DNA of 62,659 bases, filler included, from Corallochytrium limacisporum Hawaii (lineage: Eukaryota > Protista > Pluriformea), in assembly GCA_002811645.1 (NCBI GenBank). It is 4 parts of 4 records of this genome, joined end to end, with 100 filler letters (N's around TTAATTAATTAA, not from the genome) between each part and the next. Parts side by side here need not be neighbours in the genome. Positions count along the whole stretch, not along the records: positions 1 to 31,424 come from PDIP01000116.1; 3 more parts are not named here. One strand, given 5' to 3'. Positions 8,853 to 23,934 of this stretch are shown in pieces. The position numbers and the translations under genes are program-made. The notes beneath the pieces were generated by a model, which was given only the letters and a program-made list of their open reading frames with translations, was not told the origin of the DNA and ran no database searches. Position 1 is the first letter of the stretch. The number at the start of each line of letters is the position of its first letter.

Positions 8853-11800
8853 ATGCTACATAGGCTGAATCACGTACGTACTGTGGGATTTAACGCTGTG
8901 GCGGGATGCGGAAGGGGATTCGGCACGTCTAGGTTCCTACGTTTCCACCCTGGCAAACATCGGGCACCCACAAATTCCAACAACATATCATACCGTCTGG
9001 ATACAAAGACCACAGCAAAACGGAGACGCCTGACACCGATCGAGCGCACTGATAACATAGTAGTCGGCGAAGTCACTACCAAAGCCAAGGGAGAATCGCT
9101 GAGGAGTCTAGCCGGAAGGGATGCGCTGGACGCGCAGAAGGAAGGCGGAGTGGGACGGCAGCACGTTGGCATCGGCCGTACTGCCGCAGAGCAGGAAATT
9201 ATGGCTGCCGAGGGCCTGTGTTTTAATGAGGATGATGGAAGAGCAACTGACTTCACCGATGAGACTTTTATTTCAGGTGAATCAGCAGGAGCAATGGAGG
9301 CGGCATCACAACCCGGTACAACCGAACGAAAACCGAGAAGTGTAGATCATTACGAGGAAAGAGGCGTCCAGGGATTGCCTCGGGGTTTCATGCTGACTTT
9401 GCGAAGTCTCAGTAATGTTCGGGACGTACAAAGCTTTCTGGCAGAGAACATACCACGAGGTACATCGCCGGCGACAGACGCGCTTATTCGGGCTACAGCA
9501 GTGATCCATGGGTCCCTGCTTGTGCGCCAGGGTTTGGCCCCCCCAGACGCCTTGCAGGCATTGGTGGCTTCCTCGCGGGTGTTTGAAAAGTTAGCAGATC
9601 TACCAACAGATGTAGCAAGCGTGAACGTGCCCCCAACAACATTCTACAACCTAGTTACGGCCGTCGCGGTGCACGGGCTCAAATTGCCGGATACGCATCC
9701 GGTGACACTTTTAGCAAGGAGTAACCTACCAACAAAATTATCGAGCAGTGGGTTTCACATGGGCCCCTTACTGTACATCATGCGTCACGTTAGGCTTCCT
9801 TCAGCACTGGAGCAAAATGTGTGGCATACCATGATCACAACATACAAACCATTGGTGGCCAGAATTGTGGAAAACAAATTCCAACTCTTGCGAGAAAAGG
9901 AGCTGTGGGCCCTGTACCTCAAAGGGTCACCAGAGCAGATGGTTCGAGTCCAGACCTCAGTTCCTGGGTTAAGAAAGGACGATCCCGACTACAGACGCAA
10001 AGTCCAAGAGTACCGGAATGATGTAGAACGGCACACTGCAGCGTTTCAGCGTTTGACAGTCATCGACCGCATTGAACGCTTTCTCTCAGAGTTCAATGTG
10101 TACCTGACTGAATATTTCCATAGCAATGCTTGGCGTAGTCACTCAATGTTCTCAGATACAAGCAATGGTACACCGGTACGGAATGATGTGGATGGAACTG
10201 CGCTCTCTTCAAGTCTTCGCAACCATTTGCGGTTGACCCTGGAAGCGGGCATTGTAGACTCGCGGCTGATGAATTACCTAATGTCTCGGGAGGCTCTGAT
10301 CAATGGGCCCAAGCCACAGAAACCCTGGCTTGAGAATTTGCACCTGGCAAACTACTTGCCACAGGCAGAAACCATGCGTGGTTTTCTGCAGATTGCAGAA
10401 GGTCGCAGGATTGTAGAACGCATCATTTCCCAAAACAATTCACCACAACCTTTACCCAGACACCTAGTGATGAGTCCGGATCAAGCTAGCGTGGCGCTCC
10501 ACTTCTGGGAACGTCATTATAATGTCAAGGGAGGACATGAGTTCTTGCACAGTATCGTGGTTGCCACCATGCGTTTGCAGTTCGAAAATATGCGGGGCAA
10601 TCTTCTGCATGTACAGCACATTTGTGATAGCATACTTAGAGGTACCAAGGACCTGGGAGACATCCCTTTGCGTCGCATCCCACGAGACGAAGTGTTGAGT
10701 AGGCTGGTCAGCAATACGAATTGGGGAGGTGTCCGGAACGCTCCAGATGAGTTTGAACAGCTGACAGGCTCCGCCGACTTGGCAAAATCAGATGGTACGG
10801 GTAGTAGACTAGACTTGCAGACTTTGAGACCATCTATGGATACCTTGGAGGCAGACCGGGCTGGCTTTCTGTTCAGCATGAATCGTACGCTCCACGACTG
10901 CTTGGATATGAATGCCCGATACCTACTATTCCGAACTAGTGAGTCTCCCTCATCAAGTGGAACTCCGCTCTCTGTCATCAAAGACTTATCTTTATATCAA
11001 AAGGACGAGATTCCAGAGAAGACCAGGGGTACACAAGAGTTTTGGGACACAGCCTTCGGCCGGTTTTGTTCGCCCAGCGAACTCATGCAAAATCTGTCGA
11101 CTTTCATGGAAGCATCTCTCCAGGGATCCCGCGTGACATCAATGAAGACGCATCTGGAGGTCAACCAGAGGATCGAACAAGCTCTTCTTGCCTATTTGCG
11201 GGACAAGTGGATGGATAAGCAGTTGCGCAATTACGAACCTTATCTCTTTACCTGGGCTGGTCCACGCAAGACCGTACGTAACGTTAAGCCAGGTCGGCTT
11301 CGATTGGAAGGATTACACTCAATCGCCGCAGGCATGTTCAGTACAGGTTACCTATCGCGGGAGATGTGCATGGAGTTGGTGGGTGAATTGGCGAGCGATG
11401 CCTGCCTTGTTGAAGATGACAATGACAGAGCGAAGACGCTGCATACAGCTGCCATTTGCTGTACACCATGGCGGCAAGCCAGTTTACTCAAGGATGACCA
11501 GGCCAGAGAACAACTGGCAAGGGTGCTCGAACGCTGTGACATCGATGCTGAAGCCTTCTTTAAGTCCCGTTTCCGTTGGAAAGCCACAGAGGGCAGTGAG
11601 GGACGCCACAATTTCACGACGGCGCTCCTGCGTGCAGCTTATGACAAGCAGGTCAACGCCATCAGCCCCGGCACTAAACGGACGGCCGCCTGGATGAGCA
11701 GCAGGAATCTGTTACAGAAATCTTTGCCATTCTATCCGTACATGACCACATTGCAACGCAACATTGTTCGCAACATGCAACAGAAGAGCGAAGGTTTGTT

Positions 11801-12146
11801 ATTCAATGTAGGCCCCATGGAGCCCTTCCGACATTCCCTCTACAAATTCGCGGATACCGAGGTAGGCCAGCACACCATTTACATTGACACGATGGCTACG
11901 GGGCACTTCTTTGTTGAAGATGGAGAAAAGTTGCGAAAGAATGCGTTGTGGGATGTGCTTTCAGCGGAAGAGGAGGCTGGCCTCGTGCGGATCCAGAGCA
12001 GTCGTCTCCTGACTGTCTATGGGCCAAAGTATGGCAGTGCCGCACGTCGCGAGATGCTGCGTAGAACAGTGCTTGAGCACCAGAGCAAGCGAAACGAACA
12101 CCAATCCCAGATGGGATTGTTGCCGGAAACAAAAATCAACCAATAA
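8853..12146 (+). CDS. Uncharacterised ~1100-aa protein, probably mitochondrial, with a degenerate C-terminal RAP-like domain
   Basis: Long uninterrupted ORF. Arg-rich, acid-free N-terminus (MLHRLNHVRTVGFNAVAGCGRGFGTSRFLRF). C-terminal TIYIDTMATGHFF...LRKNAL...GLVRI loosely resembles a RAP domain. The CDS is secure but the function is speculative. Confidence 0.75.
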   Translation: MLHRLNHVRTVGFNAVAGCGRGFGTSRFLRFHPGKHRAPTNSNNISYRLDTKTTAKRRRLTPIERTDNIVVGEVTTKAKGESLRSLAGRDALDAQKEGGVGRQHVGIGRTAAEQEIMAAEGLCFNEDDGRATDFTDETFISGESAGAMEAASQPGTTERKPRSVDHYEERGVQGLPRGFMLTLRSLSNVRDVQSFLAENIPRGTSPATDALIRATAVIHGSLLVRQGLAPPDALQALVASSRVFEKLADLPTDVASVNVPPTTFYNLVTAVAVHGLKLPDTHPVTLLARSNLPTKLSSSGFHMGPLLYIMRHVRLPSALEQNVWHTMITTYKPLVARIVENKFQLLREKELWALYLKGSPEQMVRVQTSVPGLRKDDPDYRRKVQEYRNDVERHTAAFQRLTVIDRIERFLSEFNVYLTEYFHSNAWRSHSMFSDTSNGTPVRNDVDGTALSSSLRNHLRLTLEAGIVDSRLMNYLMSREALINGPKPQKPWLENLHLANYLPQAETMRGFLQIAEGRRIVERIISQNNSPQPLPRHLVMSPDQASVALHFWERHYNVKGGHEFLHSIVVATMRLQFENMRGNLLHVQHICDSILRGTKDLGDIPLRRIPRDEVLSRLVSNTNWGGVRNAPDEFEQLTGSADLAKSDGTGSRLDLQTLRPSMDTLEADRAGFLFSMNRTLHDCLDMNARYLLFRTSESPSSSGTPLSVIKDLSLYQKDEIPEKTRGTQEFWDTAFGRFCSPSELMQNLSTFMEASLQGSRVTSMKTHLEVNQRIEQALLAYLRDKWMDKQLRNYEPYLFTWAGPRKTVRNVKPGRLRLEGLHSIAAGMFSTGYLSREMCMELVGELASDACLVEDDNDRAKTLHTAAICCTPWRQASLLKDDQAREQLARVLERCDIDAEAFFKSRFRWKATEGSEGRHNFTTALLRAAYDKQVNAISPGTKRTAAWMSSRNLLQKSLPFYPYMTTLQRNIVRNMQQKSEGLLFNVGPMEPFRHSLYKFADTEVGQHTIYIDTMATGHFFVEDGEKLRKNALWDVLSAEEEAGLVRIQSSRLLTVYGPKYGSAARREMLRRTVLEHQSKRNEHQSQMGLLPETKINQ

Positions 12147-12781
12147 TGAGAATCAGACGTCCAGCAATGCAAAACAACTCTTGGAAATAAATGTCCATGT
12201 GTGACTTGTAAGAAGCACTCTTTGTGATGTCGATTGATTATATCGGAACAATAGTGGATGCTGAGACCTAGTGGCCTATGTGAGCGACCCCTGGATAGGG
12301 GGACAGCCAGTTCTGATTCTCCCGTTCCTCTGACAATTTTCGATAACAAATTACCCATTTGGCCCCTTCGGTGCCATCACGTAGCTTTCGGTTTGGGAGG
12401 GAGTCTGTTTTCATCACCCACGGCGTACGCAATGAGTGCGGGTCTCGGCAGCTCAGGGAACGCCCAACCCCGATATCCTCCTGTTGGTAGTGGGGAGAAG
12501 GGCAGTCGAGCAAAAAAGAGCCTTGAAGGGGTGTAAGAAGCCGGCACCCACAAGGCCACGTGCAATTGGGACCCAGGGTCGGCGGATTGTTTTAGTTTGG
12601 ATTCTGGTGACATCGTTTGTCAAAAGAAGATATTCAAGGAAGATTGTGTTCTCATACTACTTGTTTACAAAGTACCTGGCAAAAGTTTGGCACATATAGT
12701 GCATGATCCGGGATCAGGCGCAGGTTCTCATGTCACAACCTTGTGCATAGTTGTAATGAGTTCGGAATTGGCCACATAAAC

Positions 12782-14620
12782 ATGGGCCAGACCGAACAAA
12801 TCACGCCGCGCACGAAAGCACGGCTTCTGAGGTTTGCAGATCTGAACGAAGAACAGAATCGGACATTGACTGAAAAGAACAAAGAGTATGGTAGGGCACT
12901 TGTGGATGCCGAGGACCACGGCATGGATCCACCTACTCCGGATAGCACAGCAGAAGAAATCTACCGCCATCCTGTGGGAACGGATGTGCTGAGACGGGGA
13001 AGTCATCCGTTTGGAATCAAACCCCTAGGCAACGTATACGATATTGGAGGACCCGCAGTGGCACTGCGGCGCAGGAGGGAATCGCTGGGTGCTTTGGCAG
13101 TACTTTCGGACGAGCTTCTCGTGGAAATCTTGGGATTGTTGGACAATGGTCAGGATATGGCGCAGTTTATGGAAGCTTCAAAGTATTGCTATGCCTATGG
13201 TGGACAGGAAGATCTGTGGCGGAATCTGAATTTCATGAACGATGGGCAGACGTTGGGACGATTCATCTACTCACCACCAAATTGGCGTCATACTTACATT
13301 CACCGCTACACGCGACATCAATTGCAGAAGCAAAATGTCAGCGAAAGGAAGAGCGTAGATGAACAGGAAGTGATAGAGCGGTGTAGCTATTGTCGGACAG
13401 GATCTCAGTCCCTGGCGCGTGCGACCGCTGACGATCTGTGTAGTCGACTGCTGTTCACGCCCTGGCACTACGCATCCCTCGCTCTGAGCACGAACTGGCG
13501 CGGCGGTGCTTACGATAAGATTCCCAAAGTCAAAGGACTAAGCGTGGAAGAATTTCACAGCCGCTATGGACAACCAAACAAGCCGGTTGTTCTGCAAGAC
13601 GCCATGGATGAATGGGCCATTAAAGAATCGTGGGCGGTGGATGGAAGCGCCATAGTTTCCGAAAATAATGCCAGCAAATCTTGGCTTGAAACGTACGCAA
13701 AGGAAGTGTTGTTTGAGGCTGAAGGTGCGCAGATAGCTCTAGCAGATTTCCTCACTTACAGCCGGACATGCATAGAAGAGAGTCCACTGTATCTTTTCTG
13801 CAAAGATTTCATCAAACGTGCACCAAAAATGGCTGAAGGCTGGGAGGTACCCCCTTACTTTCGACGTGATCTCTTTGCAGTGCTCGGTGAGAGGCGTCCG
13901 GACTATCGTTGGCTCATTGTTGGTCCGGCGCGCAGTGGCTCGACCTTCCACAAGGATCCGAATGCCACCAGTGCCTGGAACGCAGTGGTCAAAGGGCGTA
14001 AGCTGTGGGTCATGTTCCCCCCATCTGTGAAGGCACCACCAGGCGTCATACCAAGCGAAGACGGCAGCAATGTATCCACCCCGCTCAGCGTCCTAGAATG
14101 GTTTGATCAGTACTATCCCCTATGCGCAGACCTTCCACCGCATGAACAGCCGATCGAGTGCATATGTGAGGAAGGTGAGCTCATGTTTATTCCGCATGGT
14201 TGGTGGCATGCAGTGCTCAATTTGGACTTTAGTATTGCCCTTACCCAGAACTATGTGGATGAGCACAACTTAGCCAACGTTCTACACTTCCTACGGCATC
14301 AGAAGAATGCTATATCTGGTCTGGGCTGCGGTGACCTGGAGACACAGAAGCGCGTAGATGGCATTGCGGAGGAATTTGAGCAGGCCTTGCGGATCCATTC
14401 ATCTCAGACTCAAGAGTGGCTTGAGGGTGCACTGCGGGACCTGGCATCGCGGGAGCGAGTAGTGCTAGATCACGGATCTGCAGAGAAGGCAGCAGTGAAA
14501 CGCCGCAAGGTCGACGAGGGCCAGGGAGACAGTGCCAACGATACCATCAAATCAAGTGCATGGGAGGCACTGACCGCAGATGCACATAATGATAGTGAAG
14601 AGTTTTCCTTTGGCTTTTAG
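12782..14620 (+). CDS. F-box plus JmjC-domain protein (JMJD6/PSR-like 2-oxoglutarate oxygenase)
   Basis: F-box-like LAVLSDELLVEILGLL. JmjC motifs RPDYRWLIVGPARSGSTFHKDPNATSAWN and GELMFIPHGWWHAVLN. C-terminal FSFGF. Confidence 0.93.
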   Translation: MGQTEQITPRTKARLLRFADLNEEQNRTLTEKNKEYGRALVDAEDHGMDPPTPDSTAEEIYRHPVGTDVLRRGSHPFGIKPLGNVYDIGGPAVALRRRRESLGALAVLSDELLVEILGLLDNGQDMAQFMEASKYCYAYGGQEDLWRNLNFMNDGQTLGRFIYSPPNWRHTYIHRYTRHQLQKQNVSERKSVDEQEVIERCSYCRTGSQSLARATADDLCSRLLFTPWHYASLALSTNWRGGAYDKIPKVKGLSVEEFHSRYGQPNKPVVLQDAMDEWAIKESWAVDGSAIVSENNASKSWLETYAKEVLFEAEGAQIALADFLTYSRTCIEESPLYLFCKDFIKRAPKMAEGWEVPPYFRRDLFAVLGERRPDYRWLIVGPARSGSTFHKDPNATSAWNAVVKGRKLWVMFPPSVKAPPGVIPSEDGSNVSTPLSVLEWFDQYYPLCADLPPHEQPIECICEEGELMFIPHGWWHAVLNLDFSIALTQNYVDEHNLANVLHFLRHQKNAISGLGCGDLETQKRVDGIAEEFEQALRIHSSQTQEWLEGALRDLASRERVVLDHGSAEKAAVKRRKVDEGQGDSANDTIKSSAWEALTADAHNDSEEFSFGF

Positions 14621-14687
14621 AGCTTGCTGAATCGATCAACACGTTAGTATTGTGTTATGTATAGTTTTGTTCTAGGTCTCAATTTGT

Positions 14688-17486
14688 TTACATGATATTA
14701 CAGGAGAGACTGCTGCTATGATCATCGGCCAACCTCACCTGATTGAACAGGTTGGTAACCGTTCGCAGTCGTTTAACGGTGTCTGTAGTCTCAACCAGTG
14801 GGTATTTCATGTGGTCATGCAATGGTAAGAGGGCGAGCAACCAGAGACCCATTTTCTCAGGATCCTCGCCCGGCACCTCACCAAATCTCTCGCGGAAGGC
14901 GTCATCGTCTGTACCATCACCAAGCATGTTACCAATATGAGAAGCAATCTCACGGGCATGATCCATGTACTGCTGCACGTCGTCCTCATTCGGATCCACA
15001 GGATCGTCCTGGATCCACTCGACCTCGCCAACGTGATAACCGTCTTTCATACCGCGTTCAATCACCTTGAAGCGACGCACGCCGACACAATCCACCAGCG
15101 ACCGACCGTCAGGCAGCATGGTCAGGTTACGAATATACAGAAGAACACCAACGTCCATGAATGATCCAGCGGGAGATGGCAGACACATTCCAAATTGACG
15201 AGTGCCAGTTTCCACACATCGCCGCATCATCAAGCGGTACCGCGGTTCAAAGATGTGGAGTGGACAAGGAATGCCCGGGTAGGCCAAAGTGCATACGAAC
15301 AAGGGGATGTTCTGTGATGTTTCTTCTTCCTCTTCGTACTGTTTGGTGCGTTCCTCATATTCTTTATCAAAGCGCATCTTGATGAACTGCTCGAGCACGC
15401 GGTTCACACCGTGTCGCTCGGTGAGGTATCCCGGCAGCTCGCTGCGGCAGAATGGACAGCTAGAGCTATGGTCAAGGGTACGACTCAGACATCCGCGACA
15501 GTATGTGTGCCCGCAGGACGTTGTTGTGGGCATGTGCAACAGATTCAGACAGAGCTGGCATTCCAAGTCGGTCCTGGCATCCTCTGGGTGATACACACTA
15601 GCACTGTCGTACAGCCTTCTGCGTTTGCTAGGAGAAGGAGGTGGGTGCCCAATCGCCCCGGAGGACGTACCATCGTCAGTGGGTTTGCCATATATGTCCA
15701 TCAGGGCGCTCAATGAAATTTTGCACGTCGCATCTCCGGTGCGATGGTACAATTGAGCAAGACGCTGGAGACAGATCATAACCGTGTTGAGTGTGCGGCG
15801 CATGGCACCGCCAAGGAGATGGCCGTTCATGGCCTGTGTTAGCGCGCTCTTCGCAGTCGCAATTTGCTCACCTGTGGACATTGTAGGATCGGAATAGCTA
15901 TGCTTGACTAAAGCTTGTGCCAGGGCAAGTTGTCCCTTGCCATTCCGCGGCTGCTTTTTGATGGCATCTTGGGCAAAGGAAGTGCCTTTCTCAGTGTTGC
16001 CGATCTTTGTATTAACCAATGATCGTGTAACGTCCGTGTACTGCGATCCTGGAAATAGCTCTGCTGCACGGTCTAATTCCTCCAAGGCCTTCAAGACTTT
16101 CGCGCGAATACGTAACCGCTCTTCATCTGGCATGGAGAACGATGCGTTGGTGATGGTGTTGTTACGATTGCTTTCAAGGGTTCTGGTTGATACAGCTGCA
16201 CTGCTGTTGCTTTCCATCGTCTTACTTTGCTGCGAAATGTTTGTGCCATCCGTGGATGGATGAACGGGCGCATCCTTCAATATGTCGTGCAGGATCTGCA
16301 ACTCCGAATAGAGATCCGCAGCCAAAAAGTTGCGCTCATGGGCCCTGACATACCGCCTGCTGAAGCGATCCCGGATAAGCTGTTCCTCTGCACTCATAGA
16401 CGTAGTTGACCGAATACTATCCGTGCGAGTACGAGCCCTGTTTATTTCTGGGCCCGTTCCTGTCCCTTCAGTCGCTGTGTGATCCTCTGTTCCCTCGGTA
16501 GTTGGGTCCTCCTGCGGCTCTTGGTCGTCTTCTGCCCGGTGATCCGCTTCTGCTTCCTGCTCACTGTCTTCGTCATTGACATCTGCAGCCAGCCGAACGA
16601 GATCTGAGGTGAGGCCACTGAGCTGTGTTGATCCGTTGCCCGTAGCCTCCTGGATGCGCTGCAATATTGCAGTGATAGCACTTTGCATGACGGGCCGCCC
16701 GTTGGTAGCAGAAGCGGAGGCCCCTGATCCCTTTCGACACGTTGTCCACGCTAGTTCATGCCGCGTGAGCTCATTGTTGACATCAAATAGAATATTATAA
16801 GCTTGTCCTTCACTGGGAAAGGCCTTTTCAATCACCAACTTCAAGGTCACACAGCTGGAACTTCCGAAAGTATAGGGTAGCAGTGAGTTGCAAATTTCGC
16901 AGGTGCGGCTGCGCCAGGGCTCATCAATGCAAGTTCTGCAGAATGTATGTCCACAGAGTGCTGTCACTGGGTCAAAGAGAAGATTTGAGCACTTAAGACA
17001 CTCAAAGGCATTGATGTCCTGCTCTCTGCTGTCCAGTGGATTCTTGTGAATCAGTTGATGGGCCTCTGCATGTTTCCGCAAACGGTCCCTGAGTAGTACA
17101 GCCATCACGGTCATTGGCATGCTTAGTGCATGGAGATCGATAGCACGGTCAGCCTTTGGCACGAACGCATTGAAAAGATCTTCAAATGCCTCGTCAAATC
17201 GTTCCATGCGACGAAGACATTCTCCCCGTTCACTCTGTAGCTCAATCAACAGCTGCTCCTTCTCCCACACAGAGATACTGCCTTCCCGGGCCTGGGCCTC
17301 AACCTTGGCCTTCTCTCCTGAGATTCGTTCAAGGGCCTGTGAGTATTCCTTGGCTGCGTAATGTGCCCTCAAGTCTTCAACGATGGCCATGAAACCGATA
17401 TCACTGCGAGGGGTAGCAGGTTCGGCAGGAGAGTCATCCCCATCTTGACCAGCATTTTTGGGTCGTGACTTCCTGGGGTCTGCCAT
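14688..17486 (-). CDS. LONRF: LON peptidase N-terminal domain and RING finger protein (TPR-RING-TPR-RING-LON)
   Basis: Two C3HC4 RINGs (CLKC...CGHTFCRTC and CQLC...CGHTYCRGC...CPFCR). LON substrate-binding domain PLHIFEPRYRLMMRRC, LPDGRSLVDCVGVRRF. Confidence 0.93.
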   Translation of the reverse strand: MADPRKSRPKNAGQDGDDSPAEPATPRSDIGFMAIVEDLRAHYAAKEYSQALERISGEKAKVEAQAREGSISVWEKEQLLIELQSERGECLRRMERFDEAFEDLFNAFVPKADRAIDLHALSMPMTVMAVLLRDRLRKHAEAHQLIHKNPLDSREQDINAFECLKCSNLLFDPVTALCGHTFCRTCIDEPWRSRTCEICNSLLPYTFGSSSCVTLKLVIEKAFPSEGQAYNILFDVNNELTRHELAWTTCRKGSGASASATNGRPVMQSAITAILQRIQEATGNGSTQLSGLTSDLVRLAADVNDEDSEQEAEADHRAEDDQEPQEDPTTEGTEDHTATEGTGTGPEINRARTRTDSIRSTTSMSAEEQLIRDRFSRRYVRAHERNFLAADLYSELQILHDILKDAPVHPSTDGTNISQQSKTMESNSSAAVSTRTLESNRNNTITNASFSMPDEERLRIRAKVLKALEELDRAAELFPGSQYTDVTRSLVNTKIGNTEKGTSFAQDAIKKQPRNGKGQLALAQALVKHSYSDPTMSTGEQIATAKSALTQAMNGHLLGGAMRRTLNTVMICLQRLAQLYHRTGDATCKISLSALMDIYGKPTDDGTSSGAIGHPPPSPSKRRRLYDSASVYHPEDARTDLECQLCLNLLHMPTTTSCGHTYCRGCLSRTLDHSSSCPFCRSELPGYLTERHGVNRVLEQFIKMRFDKEYEERTKQYEEEEETSQNIPLFVCTLAYPGIPCPLHIFEPRYRLMMRRCVETGTRQFGMCLPSPAGSFMDVGVLLYIRNLTMLPDGRSLVDCVGVRRFKVIERGMKDGYHVGEVEWIQDDPVDPNEDDVQQYMDHAREIASHIGNMLGDGTDDDAFRERFGEVPGEDPEKMGLWLLALLPLHDHMKYPLVETTDTVKRLRTVTNLFNQVRLADDHSSSLSCNIM

Positions 17487-19995
17487 CGTCCCTCTTGATA
17501 TCGGCTATGGCTGTAATATACTAAACTCCACTCTAGAGTGTTTGTGGTGCACCTATGTGATCACCATCTCTTTTGATTTACCGTTGACAGTCAAGGCGCT
17601 CGCACCTCCAAATCAAACTATAGCACATGACCTTGAATGTCGCTGTATTACAACAAAAATCTTTTCAGAAGTACCCACACAACGGAAAAGGGTTGTGTGA
17701 TCAGCAGAGCTGGGCAGTGCGTCAATAAGGACGAACGCTGACGCTGGTTCATCTCTCCTTCCGATGCAAGTCGGGCACCAGATGGAGACTGCTGCACATC
17801 ACCGGGACACCGCCATCCCAGAGGAGCCGGGGGTGTGCCCAATGCCAGCCAAGTGGTCGCGTCCGAATGGTATCTCCCAGTTTATCCCCCCTGCCGCTAC
17901 AGCCTTGCATGAAGGGGTTTCCGCCGGTGTCTGCAGTACCCCACACTCGCCAGCAGCGGTCCCCGTCGGTCAGGTGCCGTCAGGGGCTCGAATCCGAACT
18001 AAACTGCTGCCACAGCTCGGTACGATACCCAGTGTGGGCCTATTCTCTCACTATTGAATTGCAGCTGGAAGGGGAAAGGAAAATTTAGGGGCTGTTCCTC
18101 GCTATCTCCTCCCGGGCGGGACTACAGTATTCTACGGGCCCGGCTTAGGTTGTCGTCTGAACGAGGAGTGTGCTAAAGCGGGGCCCAAAAGAGGGGGGTA
18201 GGGGGGAGTGTGAGAGGCGGGAGTGAGCCTTGCCGAGATTATGTGGGTCTCACTTTCTTCTGCAACATCATTAGCTAATTAGTGATCCCATGTTAGGGTA
18301 ATCAGCTATAAAGTCTCTGCAAGTTGAGCGGGCTGCTGATATTTTGGGTTTAGTCCTGGTAAGGGGTCTGCAGTTTGTGCGTGGGTGTGATGATGTGGCC
18401 TGCAGTCAGGGACGGTAATCTCTACCATGGCCGGATAGGCAAGTATGGAAAGCATTGTTCTCTGTGTGTACATACACGCTGAGAGAAGCAGGTGCTATCA
18501 ACAACACTTTGGTGATGTGAAAGCAGGATGAGAAGTCCCAGCAGGCAATGTGAAAACTGCAGAATCTGCGTGGGGAAGGCAAGACATGCCCAGCGTGCAG
18601 GAGCAGCAGGCTGGGTTTGGTTCGGAGCGGGCAAATTCCTGACCGGGCTGCGGGAAGAAAAAAGTTACTCATTCATATCAATTCAAAAAACATATAGAGT
18701 ACACATAGCACAAAAGCACACGGATATACACTCATGAATGAATCGGTCACCAAAGCTATGCTGTCCAAAATTTGCAATTCGCGGAGAGAGCCGATGCAAC
18801 TGTGTCTCATTTCCGTGCACAGGGGCGTGCTCAATGTATAATGTGACGATAACACAAACAACCGGGCCAACCGTGGCTACTCCCGATATGATCCAATGGC
18901 TACTACAGTCGACAAACCAAACACAGGTCAACACGGACCAATTGCCTCCACTCGCCCGGGCCCTCCGGCCGTCGTTACCGCAAAAGACTGTGGTACCAGC
19001 GCGACAAATGGCCAATATTTCTTCACTTTCTTCTAATATTTTTTCCCGTCTTCTCTCCCCGCACGATGCCCCCGGCGAAAACACGCAGGATAAATCCAGC
19101 CGGCGGAAGTTTGCCCGTACTGGTCTTATGGGAACTTGCTCTCTTGGAGGTGATATGGGAAATTGGACAGGTATCCCCTGAACAAACCCCAATCCGTACT
19201 CTGTTCTCAACCGGGGAAGTGAGGAACCCGCAGCCCCAAAGTTCGGCACAACCTTCGAAGCTCTTTGTTTGCTCCGCCAAGTTTTGGGAACAATAAACAG
19301 CCATTGAGTTCGAGTGGTTCCATACTGAAAGTGCTGGATATGCAATCCGATGTTGTCTTAGGTTTAGCCATTCCTCCGTCTGCCGTAGGGTCGCTGTGTT
19401 GTGCACCACGGTGGTAACTCACCCGATCGCTGAGTTGCGGAACAAGTCGCTTGGGTGTGTTTCGCTTGTGGGTGTGTATGTTTGTGCGTAGGAAAGGGAA
19501 AAAGAACGGTTGGTCTGACCCCGGCAGAAGTGGGCAAGTTTGGGCAAAGTGTAGCCGCCTCGGCTTGTGTTTTGATCGAACGGTAGGGACTGCGCAGCGG
19601 TTCCCATTCCGTCAGTACTGTAGAGGTTGTGGAGTCGGTGTGGTATGGAATAAGCAAAAAAAATAACTCACCGCGTACACAACTCGTGGCAGGGATTTGT
19701 AGGACACAACAGCGCTGCGGTAGGATATGACTCTTGCGCCGGTAGGTATCATCTGGGCGTGCTTTTGGCAGTCCAAAGTACACTTCAGGGTAGGTGTCAC
19801 GAGCAATGTGACCTACGAGATTGTTCCATGATTTCTGCAAAGCTTGTAACAAAATCATCAAAGTGAGCAGAAAGGTTCTTGAGGCTTGAGACTTTACACA
19901 ACTTGGAAATGATGCCTCCCTATCATCAAATCAGAAGAAAGAACATCAAAACAGAAAGGTTAATTCTGTAAGAAGTTTCATAACAATCAATCAAA

Positions 19996-21075
19996 ATGCC
20001 AAGTGTAGAAGCGGACATGGCGCAAATGACCACTGCGGTTCATGACATCAAAACCCAGGTCTACAAACTTAGTAGGCAGAAGCCCAAGGGTGATATCTTC
20101 ATGCCCAAGGATCTGATGCCGTTCCTGGAACAGCTGTACGAGCTAGATGTCAAGTTGACAGAAGAAGCAGATTCCCATCCCGAGAACAAGAAAGCAGCTA
20201 AGAGTGCAAAGGCTATTCAACACCAGATTGACACTGTGTATGCCAAGATCTGGTCCATGTTGCATGATACTACTCGCGTCGATCCCAGCGCTAGGCCCGT
20301 GGTCGGTCGCCTGCACGAACTATTTGTTCAGCTCCATGACCTCAGCAAACGCGCCTACACGGAAGCTGATGTGCGCGTCTTGCAGGAGCAATTGGTGGAC
20401 ATTGAATCCGGTATGAAGGATGGTAAATTCGTAAACGAGGATGGAGAGATCGTGGAAGGCCAAGCCGTGATTCGGTCCCTGTTGCACTACTGCTTCCGCG
20501 AGGCCCACAACATGCTAATCAAGCTGGAGAGTGTGGATCCTGCCATGCAGCCCACTATGGACAAGGTTGGTGCGATCCGTCGGGCATTGCGTCGAATTCA
20601 TGACAACAGTGATACCATTCCTAACTTGGACCCTCTGAAGCACTCGCTGGATGAGATCGACAGCGAGCGAGATGCTACTGGTTCCTTCCGCATGCAGGAC
20701 GAAATGGGTGAGTGGTTCCTGCCTGCAGGCCAGGCCATGGTCAGTGAGATGCTGGACGACTGCTACGGAATCCTCTATGAATTGCAGTGGTTGCAGGAAG
20801 CCCTGGATAAGGACCTCTTCCTGAAGCACCAAGAACTAATGCAGATTGTCAGCGATTTGCGTAACTGTGACCGTACGGGAGTATTCACTGGCCAGCACAT
20901 CCGGGAGCTGCAGCAGGGACTGCAGACCATTGACAACGAACGGGTAGATGGCAAATGGATGATCCAAGGCCGTTCCGATGTGCCCAAAGGCCAGGCCGAA
21001 CTCACCATGCTACTCGAGGAGGGATTTGAAATTGCGCACAAACTCATCCAGATTCCTGCCAGCATGACTGGTTAG
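19996..21075 (+). CDS. DUF2408 (yeast Cub1/YPL260W-like) repeat protein
   Basis: Three internal repeats of L..ID..R.dGkF......pxGQA....LL..c. Strong aaaATG start context. Confidence 0.75.
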   Translation: MPSVEADMAQMTTAVHDIKTQVYKLSRQKPKGDIFMPKDLMPFLEQLYELDVKLTEEADSHPENKKAAKSAKAIQHQIDTVYAKIWSMLHDTTRVDPSARPVVGRLHELFVQLHDLSKRAYTEADVRVLQEQLVDIESGMKDGKFVNEDGEIVEGQAVIRSLLHYCFREAHNMLIKLESVDPAMQPTMDKVGAIRRALRRIHDNSDTIPNLDPLKHSLDEIDSERDATGSFRMQDEMGEWFLPAGQAMVSEMLDDCYGILYELQWLQEALDKDLFLKHQELMQIVSDLRNCDRTGVFTGQHIRELQQGLQTIDNERVDGKWMIQGRSDVPKGQAELTMLLEEGFEIAHKLIQIPASMTG

Positions 21076-21538
21076 ATTATCAAAGGCAAAGATCCGTTGG
21101 AGGTGAACTCGGAAAAGTTCCGTTATGGAATATTTCAATTGAGATGTCAGTGCAAAATCAAGTTCAGATTATACAAGCACAAGCGTCATAGTCCAAGATC
21201 AAAACCCATAGGTTTACAGACGAGCAAAACAAATGAAAAAGAAATACACAAAACGGTAAGAAACGTAACATGGCAAGTCAGCCACGACGCATTCCCTGTT
21301 GCTGTAACATCCGATGTACGTGCTTTATTGGGTTCGGAAGGTTGGCGTGGAGTGACAATCAATCACATGTCATGTAATGAGTGCTTTTTAAAGATGATGC
21401 TGGAAAAATTCAATGTTAAGCTATGAATGGAAAGAATGTTAAGTGCTTGGTTTGGGTAGTCCGACAGGAGTGCTGTCCGTATGGAACAAACTGGACACAG
21501 ACCACTCGGCTGTACTCAGGAGGTGTTGTCGTTGTCGT

Positions 21539-22309
21539 TTAGTCAGTACTCCCCCGGCTGGAAGCTGCAGGGCTCCACGTCTTAGAAGAGGAAGCGTCTG
21601 AGGCTTCTGCAGCGAAGGCACTGACAGCAGCTGAAACAATGGCCTCCTGCCTGGCCTCGACCTCCTTGGCCACTGGGCTGATCTTCTTCATAGTTGGGTC
21701 CTTGCAGACGTAGCCACGCGAGCTAAAGTAGCCAGGGCCGTAGGTGTAGAATAGCTCTTCACCAGCTTTGATATTGCGAATTGCGTACAGAGCATGGCTC
21801 CATCCAAACTTGTAGTCAGCGCGCATGCGAATGTTGCGGAAGGCCGGGGACGAGTGGTTGATGAAGCGGGTCCAATTGGAGTGAACACCCTGCCACACTC
21901 CCTTAGTGCCGTCTTTAAAGGTTTTGGCCTTGATGTCTTCACCCTTAATGATACGGCCATCGAAGGTCATTAGAAGACCCTCCGGATCAGCAGCGTCACG
22001 ACCACCTGGCTCACCCTCGAAAAGATAGTCCGAATCCTCATTCTCCTTACCACCGCGCTTACCGATGTAGTATCCAACAACAGTGCCACGCTTGATAGGC
22101 ACCAGCGTGTAGGCACCACCACCACCGACCTTGATTTGAGACTGCGCGATGACAACATTTTTGCTGATGTAGTCGGCAGACTCGAGGTACTTACGGTAGC
22201 GCCAGCGGTGAGAGTTCTTGCTGGGCTGCAAATCCGCAGTGGATAACGACTTGGTGCCCTTTTTGCTGCCTCCCTTGAGAGATTTCTCTTTCATGACAGC
22301 AGCAGACAT
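21539..22309 (-). CDS. Small stand-alone SET-domain lysine methyltransferase
   Basis: GGGAYTLVPIKRGTVVGYYIG, WTRFINHS, IKAGEELFYTYGPGYF. No pre-SET or post-SET Cys clusters. Lys-rich N-terminus. Confidence 0.9.
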   Translation of the reverse strand: MSAAVMKEKSLKGGSKKGTKSLSTADLQPSKNSHRWRYRKYLESADYISKNVVIAQSQIKVGGGGAYTLVPIKRGTVVGYYIGKRGGKENEDSDYLFEGEPGGRDAADPEGLLMTFDGRIIKGEDIKAKTFKDGTKGVWQGVHSNWTRFINHSSPAFRNIRMRADYKFGWSHALYAIRNIKAGEELFYTYGPGYFSSRGYVCKDPTMKKISPVAKEVEARQEAIVSAAVSAFAAEASDASSSKTWSPAASSRGSTD

Positions 22310-22345
22310 GGTTTCTTTGGTTGAACTTTGTAGAAAGCCTTAAAA

Positions 22346-22750
22346 TTACTTGAGATCAGCGAGTCCGGCTTCAAGGCTGGTTGCTAAGCTGTCTGCTCTT
22401 GCTCTGATATTGCCAACGGGAACAAGAGTGCTTTGAGAGTACACGACAAGTAGAAAACCAAAAGTGTCACAGACCTTTCGGCAAACACAGCAGGCACCTT
22501 CGGGTTCGTCAAATACAAGGATAAACTCCTCCAATTCTTGGGAGAGATACTTTGATCCGTTGTTACGGTAGCTGTGCCAGATGTGGTTTACAATGGCTGC
22601 ACTTAACGCTTCGTCACGCTTGCTGTCACCTCCGTAGGCAATAACCGATCCTTCGTTATCAAGAAGAACTGCAGTGACAGTGTCTTGCTCGGTGTCTTTA
22701 TTGGTGTTCACCTCACCCAAAAAGTTAGAGATGGCCTTGGCCCTTAACAT
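22346..22750 (-). CDS. LAMTOR2: Ragulator complex protein LAMTOR2 (p14, roadblock fold)
   Basis: MLRAKAISNFL..VNT, VLLDNEGSVIAYGG and AAIVNHIWHSYRNNG match LAMTOR2 (MLRPKAL...LLLNNEGSLLAY...AAIASNIW..Y..NG). The only ATG is at 22750. Confidence 0.88.
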   Translation of the reverse strand: MLRAKAISNFLGEVNTNKDTEQDTVTAVLLDNEGSVIAYGGDSKRDEALSAAIVNHIWHSYRNNGSKYLSQELEEFILVFDEPEGACCVCRKVCDTFGFLLVVYSQSTLVPVGNIRARADSLATSLEAGLADLK

Positions 22751-23934
22751 ACCTGTAGGTAGGGGCACACTGATCAGCACCTATGAAGTCTGATGCCTTC
22801 GTTAGATTTAAAGTTGTGGAAAGGTACAGCGCCAGTGCACTACTTTCCCGTCTGTTTCAAACAAATAAAGAGATATGGGGAACTAACAAATGAGGACACT
22901 ACAAGTTTGGTTCAGAGAAAGTGAAGCGACCTTAAACCAAAGGGTACGTTACTTTATTCTCGTTTTAAAAAATATCACTCGACTCGTACCCTTTCTTCGC
23001 GGTCATTCTGCGGAAACGAAGTCAACATGGACGGCATCCTTAGAAAAAGCCTTAAAGGAGAACGGAGAAGACTCTAATTCAAAATTCGCGCGCGCGAATG
23101 AAGTCCTTTAAATGCGAACGAGAGCACCTGTGTCTGGGAGCCGTCTGGAGCAGCAGGGTCGAGAACACCTCCCTCCCCTTCCGCAACTCCCAGGGTCGTT
23201 TGATATTGACCCCTTTCGATCCAAACACAACATCGGCTACGACTGCGGCTGTGCCACAGGCTGCTGGTGGTGGCGGGCTGCCAGGGCTTGAATAGTCGCG
23301 GAAGGAACGCACACCCGGGGACCAAGCAGGCAGAAAATTGAAATATTGGCAATCTGCTAGAACATCATCAATAAATTAAATATTTTTAGTATTGAAAAGG
23401 GCTAGTGCACAAAACTGATTGTGTGTCAAAGTGTTGAACAGAGTGCCCGAGACCACAACTCTTATGCGGCCTGATTATTTCGAGGATCTTCTCCTCGGGC
23501 ATTTAGTGGAATTTTCTTCAATGATTTCTGCGTATTTCCCGCGCAAAGAAGGGGGGGGATCCCGAGGTAGAACGGGCGAGCTCAGTGCTGACGTGTACCA
23601 GGCAGGGGAGACCCGAGGGAGAGACCAGATGGGTTTTATGGGTGGCTGCGGTGTGGCGGTAGAGACCCAGGCTGGCCAGAAAGATGCACCAAAGACAATC
23701 GGTTTTAGGGGGAAGGTTTTGGGAGTGGGGAATTGGGGTTTGGAGAGAGATGAAAATCCAAAACCCGCTGTGGTGACTGCAAACGAGCTGGAAGATTGAA
23801 TGATTGAATGATTTGTACGTACGAATCAAGGGTGGGGGAGGGGAGATGACTAGGGTTCTCCTGGGCGGCAAGGCAGGCTAGCATTGCAGAAGCAGACACG
23901 ATCGACTTCATACAACAAACAGACAAGATGCGAT

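Follow-up and report, generated by a model that had tools for sequence, protein, structure and literature searches.

The locus studied here lies on the minus strand of a stretch of 62,659 nucleotides (nt, filler included) of Corallochytrium limacisporum Hawaii (GenBank assembly GCA_002811645.1), in the part that comes from PDIP01000116.1 (positions 1 to 31,424), and consists of an open reading frame (ORF) for LAMTOR2 followed head to tail by an ORF for a SET-domain protein. We consider the pair as a candidate for a dicistronic mRNA. The window is this whole stretch, along which all positions count; its part from PDIP01000116.1, which the analysis covered, is G000:C18:21700-53123, and the assembly used has 286 contigs totalling 24,109,830 bp. 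The published assembly of the organism comprises 24.1 Mb and 7535 genes (PMC5560861). The genes of the window are long uninterrupted ORFs, and for comparison they were combined with those of contig C1 (86.5 kb), giving 34 ORF-genes in 118 kb.

The features of the locus are collected in Table 1. The LAMTOR2 and SET ORFs share one reading frame, with their starts 441 nt apart, and a second in-frame TAA (22342-22340) lies inside the spacer. An earlier, sequence-only reading of this DNA had described two minus-strand ORFs head to tail with a 36-nt spacer free of AATAAA, and had placed the other tandem genes hundreds of bp apart. Coordinates and spacer were verified, and the gaps of the other same-strand neighbour pairs in the 118 kb are all at least 594 nt. 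At only 36 nt, the spacer leaves no space for a terminator and a promoter. An AT-rich, TATA-like run lies about 25-50 nt upstream of 22923, and transcription probably starts within 22924-23005. A comparison of three 5' ends revealed no common core-promoter motif. The C-rich promoter-like tract that the sequence-only reading had placed about 420 bp upstream of LAMTOR2 is well upstream of 22923, where the X1 transcript contig starts.

Table 1. Features of the LAMTOR2-SET locus (X1 is one of two public runs described in the text)
Feature	Positions	Strand	Basis or boundary
Upstream ATG-free stretch	22924..23005	-	from upstream ATG 23006 to 5' end of X1 transcript contig
5' leader, 173 nt, without ATG	22751..22923	-	X1 contig coverage
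ORF1, LAMTOR2 orthologue, 134 aa	22346..22750	-	ATG at 22750, TAA at 22348-22346
Inter-ORF spacer, 36 nt, without ATG or AATAAA	22310..22345	-	sequence
ORF2, SET-domain protein, 256 aa	21539..22309	-	ATG at 22309
3' untranslated region, X1 contig end 21330	21324..21538	-	AATAAA at 21329-21324
Span of the single 1594-nt X1 contig	21330..22923	-	identical to genome

Residues 1-131 of ORF1 align to residues 1-120 of the solved mouse and human LAMTOR2 (phmmer E 1e-13); M1 matches M1, and register with the mammalian protein is kept to the C-terminus. Taken alone, the Pfam Robl_LC7 match is below the cut-off (19.3 versus 23 bits). Judged by alignment, ORF1 is a true orthologue of LAMTOR2, the Ragulator subunit with the Roadblock/LC7 fold. 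The heterodimer partner LAMTOR3 is encoded in the same genome (PF08923, 50.5 bits, G000:C7). The nearest LAMTOR2 relative, found in an exhaustive HMMER search of 1.8 billion representatives, is metazoan and 39% identical. Word-indexed homologue searches with both ORFs returned self matches only, and an exact-protein look-up found neither ORF1 nor ORF2 on record.

The SET domain of ORF2 is full-length (PF00856, 44.9 bits versus a cut-off of 22.4, profile positions 3-105 of 105). In the alignment with EZH2, RFINHS and GEELFYTYG lie opposite YINHA and GEELFFNYG, and the NHS and ELFYTY motifs (the latter with the catalytic Tyr) are intact. The best solved match is to EZH2, of whose SET domain only the C-terminal half is covered (E 6.5e-5), the atlas look-alikes are small stand-alone SET proteins, and no close relative was found in the sequence libraries searched. 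ORF2 is predicted to be a small stand-alone SET-domain lysine methyltransferase. Both genes are single-copy in the assembly, so that neither has a monocistronic back-up gene.

ATG depletion and start contexts

From the LAMTOR2 start to the SET start (441 nt, minus strand), no ATG occurs in any frame besides the two start codons, which confirms what the sequence-only reading had noticed. The same reading had described about 250 nt upstream of LAMTOR2 as ATG-free; the nearest ATG is at 23006, giving 256 nt. The X1 contig begins at 22923, 614 nt before the SET ATG, and this interval holds a single ATG, the LAMTOR2 start, compared with 6.4 expected. The ATG-free distance upstream of the start is 441 nt for SET and 22-236 nt for the other genes.

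The depletion was compared with four nulls. At the pooled ATG density of the 10 other window genes (0.0195 per nt), 7.9 ATGs would be expected in ORF1 and P(0) is 4e-4; the earlier estimate of about seven with P of about 1e-3 is thus borne out at gene density, though not under the strictest null (see below). None of the 5597 in-frame windows of 405 nt in these 10 genes is ATG-free. When synonymous codons are redrawn for the same protein, P(0) is 0.018, and with the codon order shuffled it is 0.0225. A first-order Markov null taken from this stretch yields P = 0.015 for ORF1 together with the spacer and P = 0.010 for the 614 nt; this null is the most conservative, as it already absorbs the low AT dinucleotide count of the stretch. 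ATG depletion of the ORF1 stretch exceeds chance under every null tried.

Two independent layers make up the depletion, loss of Met and choice of codon. ORF1 contains no internal Met, compared with 2-7 in each of 38 LAMTOR2 homologues, and the four columns that are Met in 66-76% of the homologues (FILM, DCME, LCMY and GML in mammals) are V, P, V and N here, in agreement with the replacements listed in the sequence-only reading. The five Asp, Asn or Tyr codons of ORF1 that precede a G are all NAC, also as described before; NAT is used at 58% of such sites in other genes. About 6% of the possible point changes in the stretch would yield an ATG, so the ATG-free state must be maintained.

Start contexts were scored with a position weight matrix (PWM) from 27 genes of at least 200 aa in the window and C1, LAMTOR2 being ranked among 28. 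A occupies position -3 in 91% of the 27 genes. The LAMTOR2 start, acaggtATGt (G at -3, U at +4), scores -1.65, the third lowest of 28, while the SET start, gaaaccATGt (A at -3), scores +2.98, above the median, and matches the consensus. The earlier statement that ORF1 has the weaker context agrees with these scores.

Close neighbours, brought together for instance by a recent deletion, might carry an ATG-free ORF1 by chance, with SET translated independently of it. The local Markov P of only 0.015, the choice of the locus from a very large scan and the presence of two further ATG-free minus-strand runs of at least 439 nt in the same window (846->407 and 19304->18810) are compatible with such a coincidence. 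We nevertheless consider it improbable, because independent features coincide at this locus: the bounding by start codons, the unique 36-nt spacing, the weak-then-strong contexts, the loss of all four commonly conserved Met and the single contig in each of two strains (described below). The two other runs are of a different kind, 846->407 being antisense to a Q/G/Y low-complexity coding stretch and 19304->18810 lying in a non-coding-looking stretch. Both were examined as further dicistrons and rejected on these grounds; neither is bounded by two ORF starts.

Transcript contigs and routes to SET translation

Two public runs from 2015 (X1 and X2) were used, which come from two studies and two strains under the same organism code, about 0.7% apart. 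Both are flagged only 'RNA?' and each holds 13 Mb in 10,000-17,000 contigs. Coverage stops at the intergenic intervals 21217-21329 and 22924-23401, depth varies by gene and the ranking of genes differs between the runs; X1 and X2 behave as transcriptomes. In X1, one contig of 1594 nt covers the leader, LAMTOR2, the spacer, SET and the 3' untranslated region up to an AATAAA. In X2, one contig (21383-22729) runs across the spacer. At the pair, the contigs of both runs follow the genome collinearly and without joints, so that no intron is indicated; they also lack loose ends there, which would have hinted at a spliced leader or at polyadenylation within the pair. A further AATAAA is located within the LAMTOR2 coding sequence (CDS) at 22702-22697. 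The neighbouring genes, 113 and 479 nt away, are on separate contigs.

The start codon of LAMTOR2 (22745-22760, minus strand) is embedded in cctacagGTATGTt, which looks like a 3' splice acceptor (pyrimidine run and CAG) as well as a 5' splice donor (GTATGT). Among the contigs of X1 and X2, none is spliced at this position. Among three neighbouring genes, the contig of the pair has the least depth in X1 (133) and the greatest in X2 (754). This shift in relative depth suggests condition- or strain-dependent regulation, contig depth being a poor measure.

The shared frame of the two ORFs, together with a GTAA...AG string that spans the stops, would permit a LAMTOR2-SET fusion protein, if ribosomes read through the stop codon or a mini-intron were spliced out. 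Such a product is very unlikely. The candidate intron is just 24 nt long, and LAMTOR2 ends where mammalian LAMTOR2 does. The fusion was rejected on the two in-frame TAA codons and on the collinear, unspliced contigs of both runs.

Differences between the strains show that both frames are read as protein. All coding differences of the pair between X2 and the genome are synonymous (5/5 in SET, codon 16 included, and 1/1 in LAMTOR2), which points to purifying selection; the same is true of 11/11 differences in two neighbouring genes. The spacer carries two single-nucleotide polymorphisms (SNPs) in 36 nt, neither of which makes an ATG. The spacer sequence is thus weakly constrained, which speaks against a structured entry element, and an Rfam search of 21200-23100 gave no match.

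These data bear on a dicistronic mRNA in which SET would be reached by termination and reinitiation, or by internal ribosome entry in the spacer. The short spacer and the single contig over both ORFs are in line with either route. However, neither needs an ORF1 free of ATG in all frames or a weak ORF1 start. Reinitiation in eukaryotes is inefficient after an ORF of 134 codons, and the two spacer SNPs and the empty Rfam result argue against a structured entry site. Taken together, these two routes appear quite improbable.

A different arrangement, the most serious alternative, would place a second transcription start close to the beginning of the LAMTOR2 CDS or shortly within it, giving a SET-only mRNA with a leader of about 420 nt. 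The long LAMTOR2 mRNA would still run through SET to a shared 3' end, and SET would be made mainly from the shorter mRNA. The deeper X2 contig (754 versus 133) stops at 22729, while that of X1 reaches 22923; a TTTAAAT motif precedes the LAMTOR2 ATG by about 50-60 nt; and the two runs disagree strongly in the relative depth of the pair. ATG depletion would be required equally, the purge then serving the 420-nt leader. We regard this arrangement as possible, if on the unlikely side. Contig ends and holes prove nothing, and the ATG depletion starts exactly at the LAMTOR2 ATG and extends over the preceding 256 nt, which fits scanning from an upstream start site. The weak LAMTOR2 start context would moreover have no role, and a leader of 420 nt is very long compared with the 35-170 nt seen here. 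The contigs are compatible with this arrangement and with leaky scanning on a dicistronic mRNA alike. Common to both is that ribosomes scan through the LAMTOR2 CDS to SET, and this shared core is likely.

Our preferred interpretation, to which we assign a probability of roughly 0.55, is that LAMTOR2 and SET form one transcription unit whose dicistronic mRNA is translated by leaky scanning. One promoter would give a mature mRNA of about 1.6 kb with both ORFs. The 40S subunits would load at the cap and scan the ATG-free leader of about 170 nt, and most of them would initiate at the LAMTOR2 AUG despite the missing A at -3. The fraction that leaks past this codon would meet no AUG for 441 nt and would initiate at the consensus AUG of SET. 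The LAMTOR2 CDS would then serve as the SET leader as well, with Met codons and out-of-frame ATGs purged to keep the path open, and the LAMTOR2:SET ratio would be governed by the leakiness of the first start codon. Leaky scanning is the most economical reading, as the purge of ATGs from ORF1 would be useless for reinitiation or internal entry and would be needed by scanning subunits. The ATG-free interval is bounded exactly by the first and the second start, which favours leaky scanning.

Several observations weigh against this interpretation. Under the strictest null, the depletion has a P of about 0.01-0.02, not 1e-3. The contigs prove neither a single molecule nor a strand, and where a contig stops is not where a transcript stops. 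In X2 the contig reaches only to 22729, so that the first 21 nt of the LAMTOR2 CDS fall outside it; this may be an assembly effect or may hint at a downstream transcription start. At 173 nt or more, the leader is long beside those of two neighbouring genes (at most about 42 nt; about 35-42), and it departs from the short leaders that are a tendency, though not a strictly defining one, of comparable loci in green algae. The G at -3 of LAMTOR2 is still a purine, so that the first start is moderately weak rather than poor. Finally, a second tight tandem pair or a second ATG-free gene is absent among the 32 other ORF-genes of the 118 kb. Overall, the claim of the sequence-only reading that one mRNA yields both proteins by leaky scanning is partly supported, by the sequence tests and by the single contigs in two runs, while a SET-only transcript nested within it keeps some probability.

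Other observations in the window and contig C1

Between two divergent genes, a stretch of about 2.5 kb (17487-19995) has no convincing ORF and is ATG-poor on both strands, with ATG-free runs on the minus (19304->18810 and 18268->17910) and the plus strand (17909->18241). Its GC content reaches 0.62 with strong swings in GC skew, and no RNA coverage was found in the part checked (19600 onward). The contigs of the adjoining DUF2408 gene begin at 20005 (X2) and 20032 (X1), downstream of its first ATG (19996); translation may in fact begin at Met8 or Met11, unless the leader is extremely short. A JmjC gene (plus strand, ends 14620) and a LONRF-like RING/LON gene (minus strand, ends 14688) are convergent, with stop codons 67 nt apart, so that their 3' untranslated regions must overlap or be very short.

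On contig C1, a tandem array (26049-51219, loci L004-L007) contains eight paralogues of about 360 aa, two on the minus and six on the plus strand. Five of the eight starts read (t/c)t(g/c/a)aacATGg, and the remaining three differ in context. Pfam was applied to one member and identified it as a 2OG-Fe(II) oxygenase (DIOX_N and 2OG-FeII_Oxy). The same contig encodes a protein of 1524 aa with four transferrin matches (70300-74874). The C-terminal domain of PGM1 is of the vertebrate/fungal type. Nearly all of the 39 Ras-family matches span the Pfam model end to end in a single open frame. The genome is accordingly very intron-poor, and ORF-based scans for dicistrons would be feasible on the full assembly.

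Relation to known dicistrons and reach of the claim

Translation of protein-coding dicistrons by leaky scanning is proven for green algae and for a few plant and animal genes. Those of Chlamydomonas and Auxenochlorella are nuclear and exclusively bicistronic, and leaky scanning was shown in vivo; what marks them is a weak start for ORF1 but a consensus start for ORF2, with a short spacer and with upstream AUGs few or absent (PMC11892635). At the Corallochytrium locus we find a weak ORF1 start, a consensus ORF2 start, an AUG-free interval, a short spacer and coding conservation between isolates. As in the algal loci, each ORF has its own start and stop, the first start is sub-consensus, few or no AUGs precede ORF2 and the ORF1 protein is small and conserved. 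In contrast, the host is an opisthokont protist and not a member of Viridiplantae, the leader is at least 173 nt where the algal leaders are short, and one locus, known from sequence and contigs, stands against 36-87 per genome in the algae.

The CDC26-TTM3 bicistron of land plants and green algae is, according to the account cited in PMC11892635, conserved over hundreds of millions of years. As summarised there, its ORF1 likewise encodes a small subunit belonging to a conserved complex and its ORF2, on the same mRNA, an unrelated enzyme, although CDC26 is much shorter than the 134-aa ORF1 here. In upstream ORFs, as would be the case for LAMTOR2-SET, a leaky upstream start sets the supply of ribosomes to the downstream start; ORF1 differs from them in being a full-length, conserved, single-copy housekeeping protein rather than a short regulatory peptide. 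Human MOCS2A/MOCS2B is dicistronic and uses leaky scanning, with overlapping ORFs for two subunits of one enzyme. This holozoan case resembles the present one in giving two proteins per mRNA via bypass of the first AUG (see also PMC9607355), whereas the ORFs of LAMTOR2 and SET are free of overlap and without a known functional link. In fungi and Cryptosporidium, read-through or overlapping polycistronic transcripts usually occur together with monocistronic RNAs and without a purge of AUGs from ORF1 (10.1101/2025.01.17.633476). They share with LAMTOR2-SET the placing of neighbouring genes on one RNA in a compact genome, but the 36-nt spacer and the purge point here to obligatory co-transcription with scanning through ORF1.

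A literature search found no bi- or polycistronic mRNA reported for Corallochytrium and, for other unicellular holozoans, none among the matches listed. LAMTOR2-SET is thus a candidate for a leaky-scanning dicistron, of a known type, in a lineage without an earlier report. The suggestion in the sequence-only reading that such loci form a genome-wide system in this lineage is unsupported, the pattern being shown by 0 of the 32 other ORF-genes in the 118 kb. The LAMTOR3 locus is monocistronic with internal Met present, and at the MoaE locus no MoaD-like ORF lies upstream among ORFs of at least 50 aa. It is doubtful that the locus is the first visible member of an obligately dicistronic, leaky-scanning gene set in the unicellular relatives of animals.

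If confirmed, the locus would show that a full-size conserved protein can be recoded, by replacement of Met and synonymous avoidance of ATG, with its CDS serving a second gene as leader. Nature would thereby provide a compact test case in a close relative of animals, and Corallochytrium is transformable. It would also be a warning for annotation, two adjacent 'genes' standing under one promoter, and it offers a signature for searches: a tandem gap of less than 100 nt, an ATG-free ORF1 and weak-then-strong start contexts. If, as is doubtful, the locus does belong to such a gene set in the unicellular relatives of animals, the mechanism of the green algae would also operate on the animal stem lineage. 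The dosage of a nutrient-sensing subunit of Ragulator/TORC1 would be coupled to that of a predicted lysine methyltransferase, and their ratio could follow the stringency of start-codon selection and hence the nutrient or translation state.

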